From Guillardia theta CCMP2712 (Eukaryota; Protista; Cryptophyta), in NCBI RefSeq assembly GCF_000315625.1, contig NW_005434633.1, positions 460,645 through 515,267 on the forward strand: DNA of 54,623 nt, in the 5' to 3' direction. The translations under genes were made by a program, and so were the position numbers. Under the pieces are notes generated by a model. The model did no database searches, was not told the origin of the DNA, and saw nothing but the letters and a program-made list of their open reading frames with translations. Of the stretch, positions 3,599 through 46,892 are shown piece after piece. Position 1 is the first letter of the stretch. Each line of letters starts with the position of its first letter.

Positions 3599-4144
3599 AT
3601 GTCGACTGACACCAGACCTCGCGCCCACATCACTGACCGCATCGCTTGCGAGATCTACCTCTTCCGCCTCTCCCAGCCCCCCGACCAGCTCTGGCTCCCT
3701 ACCCCCGCCAGCGTCGCGCTCGGCAGGAGGTACGGCATCACGCCCAAGGCCGTGCGAGACATCTGGAACAGGCGGACCTGGGCGCGTGCGACGTGTCACC
3801 TTTGGAAAGACAAGGCAGGACAGACCATGCCCCTGAAACAAGAGAGACAGGAGGGCGCCGGATCAGATCGGATGCTCAACGAGGAGGAGGAGGTCGTATC
3901 AACACTGAAACCTGAGCTGCGTACGGAAGAACAAATTCCATCTCCGTTGTGGAGTCCTGCAAACGTTCAAGCAACGGATGATATTGGAAACGAAGCAAGC
4001 ATCGTCGAGTTTCAAAGCAACAACGAGGCTACAGGCCTTTTGGACAGAACGGCAGACACGCACTGCGAGGGATGGCTGGTATGTCCTGCACGCATACTAC
4101 TCTTCATGTCCGCGCAAGAGACGTCCGAGGACGATATCTGGTGA
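3599..4144 (+). CDS. Small HTH-domain family protein, copy 1
   Basis: PRAHITDRIACEIYLFR...ASVALGRRYGITPKAVRDIWNRRTW core plus C-terminal EGWLVCPARILLF motif. Confidence 0.8.
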   Translation: MSTDTRPRAHITDRIACEIYLFRLSQPPDQLWLPTPASVALGRRYGITPKAVRDIWNRRTWARATCHLWKDKAGQTMPLKQERQEGAGSDRMLNEEEEVVSTLKPELRTEEQIPSPLWSPANVQATDDIGNEASIVEFQSNNEATGLLDRTADTHCEGWLVCPARILLFMSAQETSEDDIW

Positions 4145-5991: not shown

Positions 5992-6462
5992 TCATCCTTG
6001 ATGGTCTCCTCGTTCCTCCGGCTCCTCTTCCCCCCCGCTCGTCGAGATGAAGAGCTTGATCCGCTCCGGGCACACCAGCCACCCCTCCCCCGTGTGAGTA
6101 GCCGACGACCCCCCGCTGCTCCTCCCCTCCTCCCCTGACCCCTGCCATGACCCGCCATCATCCCCCGCGTCAGCCCGCGCGGACTGCGAGGACGACGAGC
6201 TGGCGGGCGCAGGCTCGGGCCCTTGCTGGCGGGCGGGGGCAGGGGCGTCGGCGGGAGGGAGCCAGAGGTGGCGGGTCGCGTGCGCCCAGGTCCGCCTGTT
6301 CCAGATGTCTCGCACGGCCTTGGGCGTGATGCCGTACCTCCTGCCGAGCGCGACGCTGGCGGGGGTAGGGAGCCAGAGCTGGTCGGGGGGCTGGGAGAGG
6401 CGGAAGAGGTAGATCTCGCAGGCGATGCGGTCGGAGATGTGGGCGCGAGGTCTAGAAGGCAT
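5992..6462 (-). CDS. Small HTH-domain family protein, copy 2 (type A')
   Basis: ATG at 6462 (MPSRPRAHISD); same core; EGWLVCPERIKLF motif. Confidence 0.8.
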   Translation of the reverse strand: MPSRPRAHISDRIACEIYLFRLSQPPDQLWLPTPASVALGRRYGITPKAVRDIWNRRTWAHATRHLWLPPADAPAPARQQGPEPAPASSSSSQSARADAGDDGGSWQGSGEEGRSSGGSSATHTGEGWLVCPERIKLFISTSGGEEEPEERGDHQG

Positions 6463-6984: not shown

Positions 6985-7164
6985 ATGCTGCCGCTGTCCT
7001 GCTCCTCCAAGCACCGGCCCCAGTCACCCAATCCCTCCTCAGCCCCTTCCGCTGGGCCTCAGATGACGACAGAGCAGCAGCTGGAGTGTCTGTCGGCCTC
7101 TATAGAACGAATAAGGCAGCATGCGGTAATCGTTGACTCGCTTGGCCAAGAAACAAGACTGTAG
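6985..7164 (+). CDS. 59-aa microprotein, family member 1, divergent from HTH copy 2
   Basis: Hand translation: MLPLSCSSKHRPQSPNPSSAPSAGPQMTTEQQLECLSASIERIRQHAVIVDSLGQETRL*. C-terminal half aligns without gaps to 13295-13474 and 46683-46892. Confidence 0.65.
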   Translation: MLPLSCSSKHRPQSPNPSSAPSAGPQMTTEQQLECLSASIERIRQHAVIVDSLGQETRL

Positions 7165-7662
7165 GGCAGTAGACATCGGAACCATACATGACTAGCAGAA
7201 GAGTTTACAACTTCGAGAAATGAGCATAGAGAACGAGCACGCTATAGAGAACCTCGGCATATCACTGGCAGGAGTCGGCAAACGAAGGAGTCAGGTTTTC
7301 CCCTCACGGGAGAAAGGTCATCAAGCAGCTCATAGAACAAACCTCATACTGGTAAAGGATAATCGTTGGTCTATCATGAAGCGGAAGGCTCAAGCGTGCC
7401 AACACGTTGAGAATGATGTATGCCAACGGAGAGTGATATAGGCTGAGAGGTCGTGTATTGGACAATAAAATTATCAACCATGGAATACACCATCCATCCT
7501 TCTACTGAAACTATTTGAGATGTAGGAAAGACAATGAAAAATGTTTCAAATCATATCTGCTGCATCCAATCATATAGAGATTGGATGATTCTTACTCCAA
7601 CTGACAACCAACACCATCTTCTGCCAGCATGAAAGATGCAGCCTGATACCTCCGTTCGCCGA

Positions 7663-8202
7663 TCAATTCACCTCCGCCTCGTGTACCAAGTCCTGATACT
7701 CGTCGTACCCCACGTCAATAAATTCGATCCCGGGATACTTCTCGTCTTCTCGGTCCTCCGGCTCCTCTTCCCCCCCGCTCGTCGAGATGAAGAGCTTGAT
7801 CCGCTCCGGGCACACCAGCCACCCCTCCCCCGTGTGAGTAGCAGACGACCCCCCGCTGCTCCTCCCCTCCTCCCCTGACCCCTGCCATGACCCGCCATCA
7901 TCCCCCGCGTCAGCCCGCGCGGACTGCGAGGACGACGAGCTGGCGGGCGCAGGCTCGGGCCCTTGCTGGCGGGCGGGGGCAGGGGCGTCGGCGGGAGGGA
8001 GCCAGAGGTGGCGGGTCGCGTGCGCCCAGGTCCGCCTGTTCCAGATGTCTCGCACAGCCTTGGGCGTGATGCCGTATCTCCTGCCGAGCGCGACGCTGGC
8101 GGGGGTAGGGAGCCAGAGCTGGTCGGGGGGCTGGGAGAGGCGGAAGAGGTAGATCTCGCAGGCGATGCGGTCAGTGATGTGGGCGCGAGGGCTAGAAGGC
8201 AT
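7663..8202 (-). CDS. Small HTH-domain family protein, copy 3 (type A)
   Basis: 179-aa ORF with the HTH core and EGWLVCPERIKLF. Confidence 0.8.
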   Translation of the reverse strand: MPSSPRAHITDRIACEIYLFRLSQPPDQLWLPTPASVALGRRYGITPKAVRDIWNRRTWAHATRHLWLPPADAPAPARQQGPEPAPASSSSSQSARADAGDDGGSWQGSGEEGRSSGGSSATHTGEGWLVCPERIKLFISTSGGEEEPEDREDEKYPGIEFIDVGYDEYQDLVHEAEVN

Positions 8203-8656
8203 GGAGGAGCTTGTTGCGACTCACTAGGATGGTGTTTGTATCCTCAACATGGTGTACAGGTGATCTGAATGTGAAATGGCTTCTAGGGCGAGATGATGGA
8301 ATGATGCAAGGCGAGGAAAGTGGGATGGGATGAAGAATCTGCGAGGGAGTTCGGCAGGGGCTTCCGTGACGGTCGCACAAAAAAGACACCGTTTAGAGAG
8401 TTGGCTATAACATATCTTTATAGAATATTTACTACCAGGAACTTGACTCCGAAGATGTGTGACTACGACATGTGTTGCGCACGGACTCATTACGCGTATT
8501 CAAACCGCAATGAGCGTCACGCCCCCGTGACGCAATAAAACTATTTTTGTCAGCTCACGACTGGCTGGTTAACTCGCGTCGATTCAATTGGGAGTCGGCA
8601 ATAAGATCTCTTCGGAGTAGCTCTCATCGGCTGAGGCGGGTTTGTCTGGTATACAA

Positions 8657-9097
8657 ATGGAGGAGCGTTCCTGCAAGGACATCACGTCCGCCCAATCGCC
8701 TGAACCGCAGGATAGGAGGCCCTTGCATGCTGGTCAGCCTCGTCCTCGCAAGCCTAGGGTGCAGATGCCATTTGCTCACATCAATGCGTTACGGAGACAG
8801 CGTGTGTTGTGCAGAAGAAGATTGAAGGTTTCAAATATGTTGGTGTTGTATACGATGATTCTCTCGCGAAAATCTCCCCAATTCATTGTGGCTCACTTGA
8901 CCTTCAACAGATTCTACCTCGAAGTGTTGGATAAGATTATGGCTCAACGTATCAAGGATGCCAAACGTCCCCGGAAGCAAGGAACAGGATATTCTCGTGA
9001 GCCTCCTTCTCATACAGCAACCATTTCACATGCAGACCGCAAACTATTGTTCAGGATTGAAAATCATGAAATCAGGAGACTCATGTGTGCGTTCTGA
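8657..9097 (+). CDS. Small basic hypothetical protein divergent from HTH copy 3 (possible intron ~8828-8910)
   Basis: ORF begins MEERSCKDITSAQSPEP; duplicated at 11457. N-terminus weakly resembles microprotein 1. Confidence 0.45.
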   Translation: MEERSCKDITSAQSPEPQDRRPLHAGQPRPRKPRVQMPFAHINALRRQRVLCRRRLKVSNMLVLYTMILSRKSPQFIVAHLTFNRFYLEVLDKIMAQRIKDAKRPRKQGTGYSREPPSHTATISHADRKLLFRIENHEIRRLMCAF

Positions 9098-9560
9098 TTG
9101 ATGACTGACGATATACCGCACAGCAAAGATTCTGATTCCTCCCTGATTGAGACATTTCCGGGGTGAGGCGTCAGGACGGCGAGGGGTGAGTCAAGCAGGG
9201 CAGAGAAGGATAGGTTTTATCATTCTCTCGCTTCTGCAACTTCTGACTGCATCTCAACATCCTCCTGGTAAACATGCTGCGTATTGCAGACTCGTGTGGT
9301 CTCCTTGGCCGCTGCTGCTGCAGACCAGTAATCCACTCCTCCAACAGCACTCGCCGAGCCCACTCAACCATCCGTCGCACCGAGCAATAGCTGTACAGCG
9401 TTGATCTACACTCTGACCTCGGCCGAGCGTAACAAGCTGACATCATAGATGCCCAATCTTGAGGCTGGCACGCACTTTCCCAAGTCAATCCCTCGCATTC
9501 CGCGAAAGCCCGTACCCGCCAGGTATTCTCTGTAGATCGAAGCGACCTATCGTCGGTGTC

Positions 9561-10112
9561 CTACGCCTCCTTGCCTGTCCTCCTGCCTGTGCTGATGCCA
9601 TTGTCTTTCCCACAATCTGAGGTGAACAGCGAGATGCGCTCGGGGCAGAGCAGCCAGCCCTCGGCTGAGTGAGTAGCAGTTGACGAGCTGACGGGCTTCA
9701 GCTCAGTCCCCATGCTCGCCGCTGACGCATCTCCTGTCACAGCTCGCCCTGCTGCTGGCTGTGCTGGCTGGGAGTGCTTGTCGTCATCGTACATGGGAGT
9801 GCTGTGGTCGTCCTCGGGCAGCTCCTGCTGACCCTCAACGTTTTCTTCGCTTTCATCCATCTGCTCCGCCCCGACCATCTGGCCATGTGCCGTCCTATCC
9901 TCCTCCTCCCAGAGGTGGCGGGTCGCGTGCGCCCAGGTCCGCCTGTTCCAGATGTCTCGCACGGCCTTGGGCGTGATGCCGTACCTCCTGCCGAGCGCGA
10001 CGCTGGCGGGGGTAGGGAGCCAGAGCTGGCCGGGGGGCTGGGAGAGGCGGAAGAGGTAGATCTCGCAGGCGATGCGGTCAGTGATGTGGGCGCGAGGTCT
10101 TGGGGTAGCCAT
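9561..10112 (-). CDS. Small HTH-domain family protein, copy 4 (type B); upstream region replaced by the duplication junction
   Basis: MATPRPRAHITD, HTH core, EGWLLCPERISLF. Confidence 0.75.
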   Translation of the reverse strand: MATPRPRAHITDRIACEIYLFRLSQPPGQLWLPTPASVALGRRYGITPKAVRDIWNRRTWAHATRHLWEEEDRTAHGQMVGAEQMDESEENVEGQQELPEDDHSTPMYDDDKHSQPAQPAAGRAVTGDASAASMGTELKPVSSSTATHSAEGWLLCPERISLFTSDCGKDNGISTGRRTGKEA

Positions 10113-10605
10113 GGGCCAACGAGGAGCGCAAGGTACTGGAGGTGGTGTAGGACTTGCAGGAGTCGGCAAACGAAGGAGTCAGGTTTTCCCCTCCTGGTCA
10201 GAGAGGTCTTCAAGCAGCTCACAGAACAACCTCATACTGGTAAAGGATAATCGTTGGTCTATCATGAAGCGGAAGGCTCAAGCGTGCCAACACGTTGAGA
10301 ATGATGTATGCCAACGGAGAGTCGTGTATTGGACAATAAAATTATCAACCATGGAATACGAAGCAAGCAATTGTTATGTAGTGCAGGAAGCCATACATCA
10401 ACTTGAAAACTCGTCTCGTCTGCACGCTAGCACCATCCATCCTTCTACTGAAACGACTTGAGATGTAGGAAAGACAATAAAAAATGTTTCAAATCATATC
10501 TGCTGCATCCAATCATATAGAGATTGGATGATTCTTACTCCAACTGACAACCAACACCATCTTCTGCCAGCATGAAAGATGCAGCCTGATACCTCCGTTC
10601 GCCGA

Positions 10606-11145
10606 TCAATTCACCTCCTCCTCGTGTACCAAGTCCTGATACTCGTCGTACCCCACGTCAATAAATTCGATCCCGGGATACTTCTCGTCTTCTCGGTCCT
10701 CCGGCTCCTCCTCCCCCCCGCTCGTCGAGATGAAGAGCTTGATCCGCTCCGGGCACACCAGCCACCCCTCCCCCGTGTGAGTAGCCGACGACCCCCCGCT
10801 GCTCCTCCCCTCCTCCCCTGACCCCTGCCATGACCCGCCATCATCCCCCGCGTCAGCCCGCGCGGACTGCGAGGACGACGAGCTGGCGGGCGCAGGCTCG
10901 GGCCCTTGCTGGCGGGCGGGGGCAGGGGCGTCGGCGGGAGGGAGCCAGAGGTGGCGGGTCGCGTGCGCCCAGGTCCGCCTGTTCCAGATGTCTCGCACGG
11001 CCTTGGGTGTGATGCCGTATCTCCTGCCGAGCGCGACGCTGGCGGGGGTAGGGAGCCAGAGCTGGTCGGGGGGCTGGGAGAGGCGGAAGAGGTAGATCTC
11101 GCAAGCGATGCGGTCGGAGATGTGGGCGCGAGGGCTAGAAGGCAT
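10606..11145 (-). CDS. Small HTH-domain family protein, copy 5 (type A)
   Basis: Duplicate of 7663-8202. Confidence 0.8.
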   Translation of the reverse strand: MPSSPRAHISDRIACEIYLFRLSQPPDQLWLPTPASVALGRRYGITPKAVRDIWNRRTWAHATRHLWLPPADAPAPARQQGPEPAPASSSSSQSARADAGDDGGSWQGSGEEGRSSGGSSATHTGEGWLVCPERIKLFISTSGGEEEPEDREDEKYPGIEFIDVGYDEYQDLVHEEEVN

Positions 11146-11456
11146 GGAGGAGCTTGTTGCGACTCACTAGGATGGTCTTTGTATCCTCAATATGGTGTAC
11201 AGGTGATCTGAATGTGAAATGGCTTCTAGGGCGAGATGATGGAATGATGCAAGGCGAGGAAAGTGGGATGGGATGAAGAATCTGCGAGGGAGTTCGGCAG
11301 GTGCTACGTATCAGCGTCACGCTCCCGTGACGCAATAAAACTATTTTTGTCAGCTCACGACTGGCTGGTTAACTCGCGTCGATTCAATTGGGAGTCGGCA
11401 ATAAGATCTCTTCGGAGTAGCTCTCATCGGCTGAGGCGGGTTTGTCTGGTATACAA

Positions 11457-11897
11457 ATGGAGGAGCGTTCCTGCAAGGACATCACGTCCGCCCAATCGCC
11501 TGAACCGCAGGATAGGAGGCCCTTGCATGCTGGTCAGCCTCGTCCTCGCAAGCCTAGGGTGCAGATGCCATTTGCTCACATCAATGCGTTACGGAGACAG
11601 CGTGTGTTGTGCAGAAGAAGATTGAAGGTTTCAAATATGTTGGTGTTGTATACGATGATTCTCTCGCGAAAATCTCCCCAATTCATTGTGGCTCACTTGA
11701 CCTTCAACAGATTCTACCTCGAAGTGTTGGATAAGATTATGGCTCAACGTATCAAGGATGCCAAACGTCCCCGGAAGCAAGGAACAGGATATTCTCGTGA
11801 GCCTCCTTCTCATACAGCAACCATTTCACATGCAGACCGCAAACTATTGTTCAGGATTGAAAATCATGAAATCAGGAGACTCATGTGTGCGTTCTGA
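11457..11897 (+). CDS. Duplicate of the small hypothetical protein at 8657
   Basis: Identical translation in the ORF track. Confidence 0.45.
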   Translation: MEERSCKDITSAQSPEPQDRRPLHAGQPRPRKPRVQMPFAHINALRRQRVLCRRRLKVSNMLVLYTMILSRKSPQFIVAHLTFNRFYLEVLDKIMAQRIKDAKRPRKQGTGYSREPPSHTATISHADRKLLFRIENHEIRRLMCAF

Positions 11898-12360
11898 TTG
11901 ATGACTGACGATATACCGCACAGCAAAGATTCTGATTCCTCCCTGATTGAGACATTTCCGGGGTGAGGCGTCAGGACGGCGAGGGGTGAGTCAAGCAGGG
12001 CAGAGAAGGATAGGTTTTATCATTCTCTCGCTTCTGCAACTTCTGACTGCATCTCAACATCCTCCTGGTAAACATGCTGCGTATTGCAGACTCGTGTGGT
12101 CTCCTTGGCCGCTGCTGCTGCAGACCAGTAATCCACTCCTCCAACAGCACTCGCCGAGCCCACTCAACCATCCGTCGCACCGAGCAGTAGCTGTACAGCG
12201 TTGATCTACACTCTGACCTCGGCCGAGCGTAACAAGCTGACATCATAGATGCCCAATCTTGAGGCTGGCACGCACTTTCCCAAGTCAATCCCTCGCATTC
12301 CGCGAAAGCCCGTACCCGCCAGGTATTCTCTGTAGATCGAAGCGACCTATCGTCGGTGTC

Positions 12361-12912
12361 CTACGCCTCCTTGCCTGTCCTCCTGCCTGTGCTGATGTCA
12401 TTGTCTTTCCCGCAAACTGAGGTGAACAGCGAGATGCGCTCGGGGCAGAGCAGCCAGCCCTCGGCTGAGTGAGTAGCAGTTGACGAGCTGACGGGCTTCA
12501 GCTCAGTCCCCATGCTCGCCACTGACGCATCTCCTGTTACAGCTCGCCCTGCTGCTGGCTGTGCAGGCTGGGAGTGCTTGTCGTCATCGTACGCGGGAGT
12601 GCTGTGGTCGTCCTCGGGCAGCTCCTGCTGACCCTCAACGTTTTCTTCGCTTTCATCCATCTGCTCCGCCCCGACCATCTGGCCATGTGCCGTCCTATCC
12701 TCCTCCTCCCAGAGGTGGCGGGTCGCGTGCGCCCAGGTCCGCCTGTTCCAGATGTCTCGCACGGCCTTGGGCGTGATGCCGTACCTCCTGCCGAGCGCGA
12801 CGCTGGCGGGGGTAGGGAGCCAGAGCTGGCCGGGGGGCTGGGAGAGGCGGAAGAGGTAGATCTCGCAGGCGATGCGGTCAGTGATGTGGGCGCGAGGTCT
12901 TGGGGTAGCCAT
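12361..12912 (-). CDS. Small HTH-domain family protein, copy 6 (type B)
   Basis: Duplicate of 9561-10112 that retains its own upstream region. Confidence 0.8.
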   Translation of the reverse strand: MATPRPRAHITDRIACEIYLFRLSQPPGQLWLPTPASVALGRRYGITPKAVRDIWNRRTWAHATRHLWEEEDRTAHGQMVGAEQMDESEENVEGQQELPEDDHSTPAYDDDKHSQPAQPAAGRAVTGDASVASMGTELKPVSSSTATHSAEGWLLCPERISLFTSVCGKDNDISTGRRTGKEA

Positions 12913-13294
12913 GGGCCAACGAGGAGCGCAAGGTACTGGAGGTGGTGTAGGACTGGCAGGGCAGGGAGCTGTACAGGAGCAGATCCGATGGGAGAGGGTT
13001 GAGGGCTTTGTGCGTCTGAGAGCTTCGATGCAGGAGCGTGCGCATGATAGCGGCACGGCATTCCGTGACCTCTTTCGGAAAGTTACAACTGTTGGATCTT
13101 GAATGGCGAGTTTCAACGCAACGGTTCAATTTGAATGACTGAACCTGGCACGTGTCCTCGTGACAGCCAATGCTTGCTCTTATTTACTACAAGGAACAGT
13201 CCGAAGAAGTTGTATCCGAGACTTCTTCCCTATCTCGTGATCGGAGCGAAAAGCCTAAGAAGCAGCGGCGGGACGTGAGGTTACGCGCAGAAGC

Positions 13295-13474
13295 ATGCTC
13301 GCTCAGGAATGCGCAGGACAGGTGACCGAGAAGCTCTCTCCTCGTCGCCAGAGGCAGCGTCAGCCGCGGCCGCTGGACAGGAAGCGGATGCTTGCGTGCC
13401 TTGAGGCGTCCATCAAGATCATCCTCGAGAAACCGGCGGTGAAGGGAGCTCTTGGCGATCGGTTGCAGTTGTGA
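13295..13474 (+). CDS. 59-aa microprotein, family member 2, divergent from HTH copy 6
   Basis: Hand translation: MLAQECAGQVTEKLSPRRQRQRQPRPLDRKRMLACLEASIKIILEKPAVKGALGDRLQL*. Confidence 0.65.
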   Translation: MLAQECAGQVTEKLSPRRQRQRQPRPLDRKRMLACLEASIKIILEKPAVKGALGDRLQL

Positions 13475-46231: not shown

Positions 46232-46682
46232 GGTACAATATTTACTAGGATCCTCCATTTGCAAGCTCCCATTTTCACTGGGACACTATAAACCTATCCG
46301 CCATAGACTATATCTTAGTGTCGCCCACCACCCAGGAAACTGAAAACATCTCTTTTCCTCAAACGCTTCTGCCCTCTGTGGTAAACAGAATTGACTGGCA
46401 GACTACATTTCTTCCCCCCCCCCCCCANNNNNNNNNNNNNNNNNNNNNNNNNNNNNNNNNNNNNNNNNNNNNNNNNNNNNNNNNNNNNNNNNNNNNNNNN
46501 NNNNNNNNNNNNNNNNNNNNNNNNNNNCCCAACTTTCCTCCTCCGTCCTTGTGCGAGCCCCTCCCGTCCTTGTTCATTCACAGATTCTTCGTCCCCAACC
46601 CCATCCCCGTCCTCGTCCCCATCAGCCCTGCCTTGTCCTCCTTCCCTGCCACCCAGTCAAGCTTTCTTCCATCGAGTTCTTG

Positions 46683-46892
46683 ATGCAGATTCCAGCTGCT
46701 TCTTCTTCCGTATACCTCCGGGCTCCCCGCCGCCAATACTGCTCCGGCACACCCAACTCTTCCCCTTCCCCTTCCCCTCCTCCTTCCCCCGTCCCTCCCT
46801 CCAAGCAGCTCGCCACTCTCGAAGCCTCTATCCGATTGATCCTCCAAAATGCAACTGTTGTGTCGGCCTTGGGCGAGGAAATGCAGCTTTGA
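46683..46892 (+). CDS. 69-aa microprotein, family member 3
   Basis: Ends KQLATLEASIRLILQNATVVSALGEEMQL*, which aligns with members 1 and 2. Confidence 0.6.
   Translation: MQIPAASSSVYLRAPRRQYCSGTPNSSPSPSPPPSPVPPSKQLATLEASIRLILQNATVVSALGEEMQL

Follow-up and report, generated by a model that had tools for sequence, protein, structure and literature searches.

Three short open reading frames (ORFs) in a 54,623-nucleotide stretch of the Guillardia theta CCMP2712 genome (hereafter, the window) are probably intact, unannotated paralogues of a small-protein family confined, as far as sequence matches indicate, to Guillardia and Hanusia, with a C-terminal module that would be of the contact type. That the three are genuine members of this family is very likely, whatever the role of the module. 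We rate the family as a lineage-specific orphan small-protein family and the three ORFs, designated copies 1–3, as its new members. With these ORFs, the G. theta annotation gains three genes that had been missed, and a family of about 100 genes in two sister genera is documented, which is organized around a tiny module lacking any equivalent in Pfam or PDB.

Small-protein copies in the window

We scanned the 1577 open frames of the window with a profile built from non-window family members only. Exactly three family copies were detected, and the next match had an E-value of 1.6. The corresponding features are as follows.

6985..7164, + strand: small-protein copy 1, 59 aa plus stop, E 1.4e-11 (family profile without window rows)
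7054..7161, + strand: 36-residue module at the C-terminal end of copy 1, with a predicted helix (29-46) and beta-hairpin (48-50/56-58)
13295..13474, + strand: small-protein copy 2, 59 aa plus stop, module at 13364-13471, E 8.7e-9
46683..46892, + strand: small-protein copy 3, 69 aa (counted from the ATG at 46683) plus stop, module at 46782-46889, E 8.9e-16

All three ORFs were found as the first-pass annotation of this DNA had described them, with a shared C-terminal block, and their final 29 residues could be aligned without gaps. The invariant positions that it had listed were recovered in this alignment, namely L33, L36, A38-S39-I40, I43, L53-G54, the terminal L59 and the position of the stop, which directly follows the module in each of the three copies. 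Copies 1 and 2 indeed contain Cys6 and Cys35; both begin with ML...C and are of equal length. Only 13 codons of open frame precede the ATG of copy 1. In copy 3, a VYLRAP motif is located in the N-terminal region (at 46710), which is common to some other members and to one Hanusia transcript ORF. This transcript ORF resembles copy 3, including the VYLRAP sequence 9-12 residues past Met. An assembly gap (46428-46527) ends 155 bp upstream of copy 3. The module of copy 3 is 75% identical to that of two copies on contig C21, whereas copies 1 and 2 diverge most from the rest of the family, with 50–53% module identity to their nearest relative.

The exact sequences of copies 1–3 were absent from 15 billion collected proteins and from called genes, no gene with their products was on record, and a word search using all three window ORFs yielded no match. 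The only sequencing runs found to contain this stretch date from 2011 and are of unspecified kind; RNA runs of the species were also listed, but none of them as containing it. The family had been presented as overlooked. This holds for copies 1–3, which occur in no protein collection, but not for the family as a whole, because at least four G. theta gene models as well as Hanusia and MMETSP transcript ORFs carry the motif. These gene models and the Hanusia phi ORFs share with the window copies the C-terminal module, its position at or near the end, small size and a variable N-terminus; the difference is that the models are annotated (as hypothetical proteins), whereas copies 1–3 are not.

The main rival explanation is that copies 1–3 are silent or decaying duplicates, i.e., intact-looking relics of a family evolving by birth and death. 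It is consistent with the fact that they are missing from called-protein collections, including transcript-derived sets which hold other members, and with the strong divergence of copies 1 and 2. However, the invariant residues, the ATG, the open frame and a canonical stop are all retained, although synonymous sites are saturated (pS 0.81-0.91, with pN of 0.40-0.48). DNA alignment of the three copies is confined to the C-terminal block, and the differences are found mainly at third codon positions. Intact features combined with saturated synonymous change are not the pattern expected of long-dead copies. We therefore consider silent duplicates unlikely, while giving this explanation appreciable weight.

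Occurrence of the family and extent of its genes

We used the three-row alignment of window copies as a query against the G. theta CCMP2712 assembly (87.1 Mb, 669 contigs), in which the window corresponds to C41:460645-515267. At least 94 six-frame matches were detected on ~39 contigs. Thus, the count of three given by the first-pass annotation is right for the window and far too low for the genome. Of these 94 matches, 68 distinct copies in fetched loci were inspected in detail. The conserved module comprises 32-36 residues and follows the pattern ~[GC]PSRxKQLxxLxASIxLI, then ~5-6 variable residues, then [IV]xxAxGExxxL. A stop codon is present directly past the last Leu in 46 of the 68 copies, and the remaining copies have tails of up to ~46 residues. 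The region upstream of the module is Pro/Ser-rich and could not be aligned between subfamilies, and the C-terminal module is the sole constrained part of these proteins. A second short motif, [VF][YF]LRAP, was found 10-16 residues past the likely Met in a subset of members from different subfamilies (window position 46710, C21:346 kb, C23:156 kb, C154:25 kb, C80:133 kb and one Hanusia transcript ORF); copies 1 and 2 lack it.

Family members are mostly located in local clusters and include many near-identical inverted twins. Among 66 copies, 30 neighboring pairs were no more than 2 kb apart, of which 12 were tandem, 11 divergent and 7 convergent. The family expands via local tandem and inverted duplication. 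Copies 1–3 are not clustered with one another. A transposon origin of the family was rejected: loci of different subfamilies resemble one another in DNA sequence only over the 90-190 bp of the module, and no long progenitor ORF was found.

An 18-row module profile was run exhaustively with HMMER against 1.84 billion representative proteins and yielded 25 matches at E <=1e-3. All credible matches are small proteins, mostly 59-130 aa in length (the exception being a 178-aa Hanusia ORF call), and the module is located at their C-terminal end or up to ~33 residues before it. The annotated carriers are the G. theta hypothetical proteins GUITHDRAFT_113632, GUITHDRAFT_116451, GUITHDRAFT_121231 and GUITHDRAFT_116959. 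The module also occurs in transcript-derived proteins of Hanusia phi (EukProt EP00960), in ORFs of MMETSP transcripts and on short ENA contigs, one of which shows 96.7-100% identity to G. theta DNA. Two others, L052 and L053 (project PRJEB17505), are 81-88% identical to and colinear with G. theta DNA and contain orthologous small-protein ORFs, which indicates that they come from a related alga. When L053 was compared with contig C99, ~95% conservation spanned the ORF from an internal ATG and extended ~200 bp past the stop; the upstream ATG chosen by the gene caller is not conserved.

These matches place the family in Guillardia and its sister genus Hanusia only. It is known in databases as hypothetical proteins, without a name, domain model or literature, and we found no paper on the named GUITHDRAFT models or on the ENA project. 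A general literature search brought up only cryptophyte phycobiliprotein alpha subunits, which we set aside as a different and well-known family of small proteins. Two of the 25 HMMER matches, P0012 (2093 aa; 17 of the 36 profile positions matched, 14 times) and P0029 (a tandem-repeat ORF), were removed as repeat-driven artefacts.

Transcript ORFs show that some family members are transcribed. An 83-aa MMETSP ORF matches a single-exon genomic ORF (C80:74307) from end to end with 100% identity; this member is thus transcribed and its coding sequence has no intron. A second MMETSP ORF matches the copies on contig C102 over its last 74 residues, and its first 15 residues are encoded ~0.8 kb further upstream, in an exon connected by a canonical GT-AG intron.

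The second MMETSP ORF bears on another explanation, in which each window ORF would be only the final exon of a gene with several exons and the true protein would be longer than 59–69 aa. G. theta genes are generally intron-rich, and both this property and the upstream exon of the C102 pair fit such an arrangement. It is possible that copies 1–3 have a short extra upstream exon like that of the C102 member. However, the module was found in no larger protein, annotated or called, either in the G. theta genome itself or among the 1.84 billion representative proteins, which speaks against the idea, raised as a possible refutation of the first-pass reading, that the segments are terminal exons of larger known genes. 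The small size of the carrier transcript ORFs and gene models and the single-exon member on C80 also argue against longer proteins, as do the common length and ML...C start of copies 1 and 2. In addition, a gene in the opposite orientation takes up the DNA upstream. Thus, we regard the last-exon explanation as quite unlikely and prefer to view copies 1–3 as complete small-protein genes.

The locus of the C102 transcript (L049, G000:C102:253014-254323) is an inverted twin pair. The first exon (45 nt) maps to the 5' end of the other, oppositely oriented copy and is followed by a 778-bp GT-AG intron, which implies overlapping divergent transcription.

Divergent putative helix-turn-helix neighbors

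Copies 1 and 2 are each arranged head-to-head with a gene for a putative homeodomain-like helix-turn-helix (HTH) protein.

5992..6462, - strand: homeodomain-like HTH gene, head-to-head with copy 1, Met at 6462, shared intergenic region of 522 bp
12361..12912, - strand: paralogous HTH gene, head-to-head with copy 2, Met at 12912, shared intergenic region of 382 bp

The HTH family has at least 91 six-frame matches in the G. theta genome and no match in Pfam. Seven copies of the HTH gene are present in the window (at 3599, 5992, 7663, 9561, 10606, 12361 and 39218), two of which face a small-protein gene. AlphaFold2 predicted three helices (10-21, 33-42 and 46-54) in the conserved N-terminal 64 residues, albeit with a mean pLDDT of only 55, which rises to 70-76 over the first 50 residues. 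The top structural matches of this model in the VIA search were nearly all three-helix DNA-binding domains (homeodomains, Myb, Tc3 and CENP-B), but they were weak (Z 5.0-5.7).

In six of the window paralogues, the HTH-coding segment forms a 192-bp core (3614-3805, 6262-6453, 8002-8193, 9909-10100, 10945-11136 and 12709-12900) with 94-98% DNA identity, whereas the remaining parts of the proteins are only ~50% identical. This looks like gene conversion restricted to the domain-coding segment. We also observed a tandem duplication of ~2.7-2.8 kb (7488-10160 and 10431-12960, 98-99% identical), in which each unit carries two different HTH paralogues. The sequence located 3' of copy 1 (7264-7488) recurs at 10152-10359 with 88% identity and without a small-protein ORF.

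Genome-wide, the head-to-head pairing of a small-protein gene with an HTH gene was detected four times, in each case on contig C41. Two instances are the window pairs (6462/6985 and 12912/13295), and the other two, at C41:358 kb and 361 kb, represent a duplicated pair ~100 kb upstream of them. The restriction of the pairing to four instances on one contig identifies it as a local, inherited feature, which does not speak for a general two-gene system. Outside these pairs, family members face each other or other, unrelated small genes.

It could still be argued that the small protein and the HTH protein constitute a functional two-gene module with a shared promoter and physical interaction, because the head-to-head order is kept in three diverged pairs (four instances) even though their intergenic DNA has diverged beyond recognition. 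However, only 4 of the ~94 family members and 4 of the ~91 HTH matches are paired in this way, and three HTH copies in the same array have no partner. Segmental duplication passes on adjacency without selection, the three diverged intergenic regions revealed no shared motif of the kind that a common promoter might contain, and elsewhere the genes of the family are paired among themselves or with unrelated small genes. A functional two-gene module is therefore improbable. The divergent promoter region that each of copies 1 and 2 shares with its HTH gene may couple the expression of the two genes, but this arrangement is not a family-wide property.

In the arrays of two other loci (L033, G000:C70:119000-128999, and L042, G000:C111:202000-209500), small-protein genes face a different conserved small gene. 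Its product ends in a motif like FDRRRLLQPHFGQTFKVKRVGVL and had no Pfam match.

The C-terminal module and its possible function

The first-pass annotation had proposed that the ORFs are conserved at the amino-acid level under constraint, and this proposal was borne out both by the pS and pN values of the C-terminal block and by a comparison of all six reading frames in 59 distinct family DNA copies. Among these copies the third codon position was the most variable. The forward frame had a mean identity of 0.435 and a BLOSUM62 score of 1.70 per site, compared with 0.349 and 1.06 for the best antisense frame. The frame read by the first-pass annotation is thus the best conserved of the six and can be assigned as the coding one. 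A crude family-wide estimate of dN/dS in moderately diverged pairs was high (median ~0.75), which weighs against our preferred reading of the family. We rejected chance similarity, or a non-coding or antisense-coded element, as extremely improbable. Although most copies are open in the best antisense frame, whose wobble position coincides with that of the forward frame, conservation is clearly stronger in the forward direction, and the position of the stop is retained. The profile built without window copies gave very low E-values (8.9e-16, 1.4e-11 and 8.7e-9), and the gene models and transcript ORFs are read in the forward frame.

The structure of copy 1 was predicted with AlphaFold2 using a 36-row family alignment. 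In the model, residues 1-28 are disordered, residues 29-46 form a helix (pLDDT ~94) and residues 48-50 and 56-58 make up a beta-hairpin (pLDDT ~85). In the alignment, the hydrophobic residues of the helix follow a heptad-like i, i+3, i+7, i+10 pattern. The disordered N-terminus and structured C-terminus that had been expected from the sequence agree with this model, but the C-terminal part is predicted to be a helix plus a beta-hairpin rather than an amphipathic helix alone. No known domain or fold corresponded to the module. Pfam gave nothing for the 36 family members at E-values up to 10, a sequence profile search of PDB yielded 0 matches, and neither Foldseek against PDB (best E 1.8) nor a wide VIA fold search (best Z 2.5) detected a fold match. 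A protein atlas likewise provided no usable match.

Proteins of the family (mostly ~50-130 aa) consist of a fast-evolving, Pro/Ser-rich N-terminal part, which is predicted to be disordered, and one conserved C-terminal module, in which a heptad-patterned amphipathic helix would pack on the short beta-hairpin. Since a helix-hairpin of ~32 residues appears too small to form a core of its own, it would be expected to contact another copy or another protein. We tentatively suggest that the module most likely serves as a protein-protein contact piece, which would either self-associate or dock on a partner, while the variable N-terminus would form a flexible tail. This mechanism is considerably less certain than family membership itself. 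A more specific and doubtful version is that the helix-hairpin is a docking piece for the divergent homeodomain-like protein, in which case copies 1 and 2 and their neighbors might form a co-regulated two-subunit regulator or a selfish pair held together through deep divergence.

It is also possible, by analogy, that the family works in a microProtein-like way. MicroProteins such as plant LITTLE ZIPPER and animal Id are small proteins that titrate larger relatives, and, like the family described here, they combine a single structured element of the interaction type with a disordered remainder. However, their defining property is homology to a domain of larger multi-domain proteins, and no such relative of the module was found in the G. 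theta genome or among the 1.84e9 representative proteins.

The repeat protein P0012 contains 14 units that are similar to the second half of the module (pattern ~RIIRRKKxxxNSKGExxE). Its Pfam match was sub-threshold (E ~1e-3, below the gathering score), and we attribute the likeness to coincidence in a short hairpin motif.
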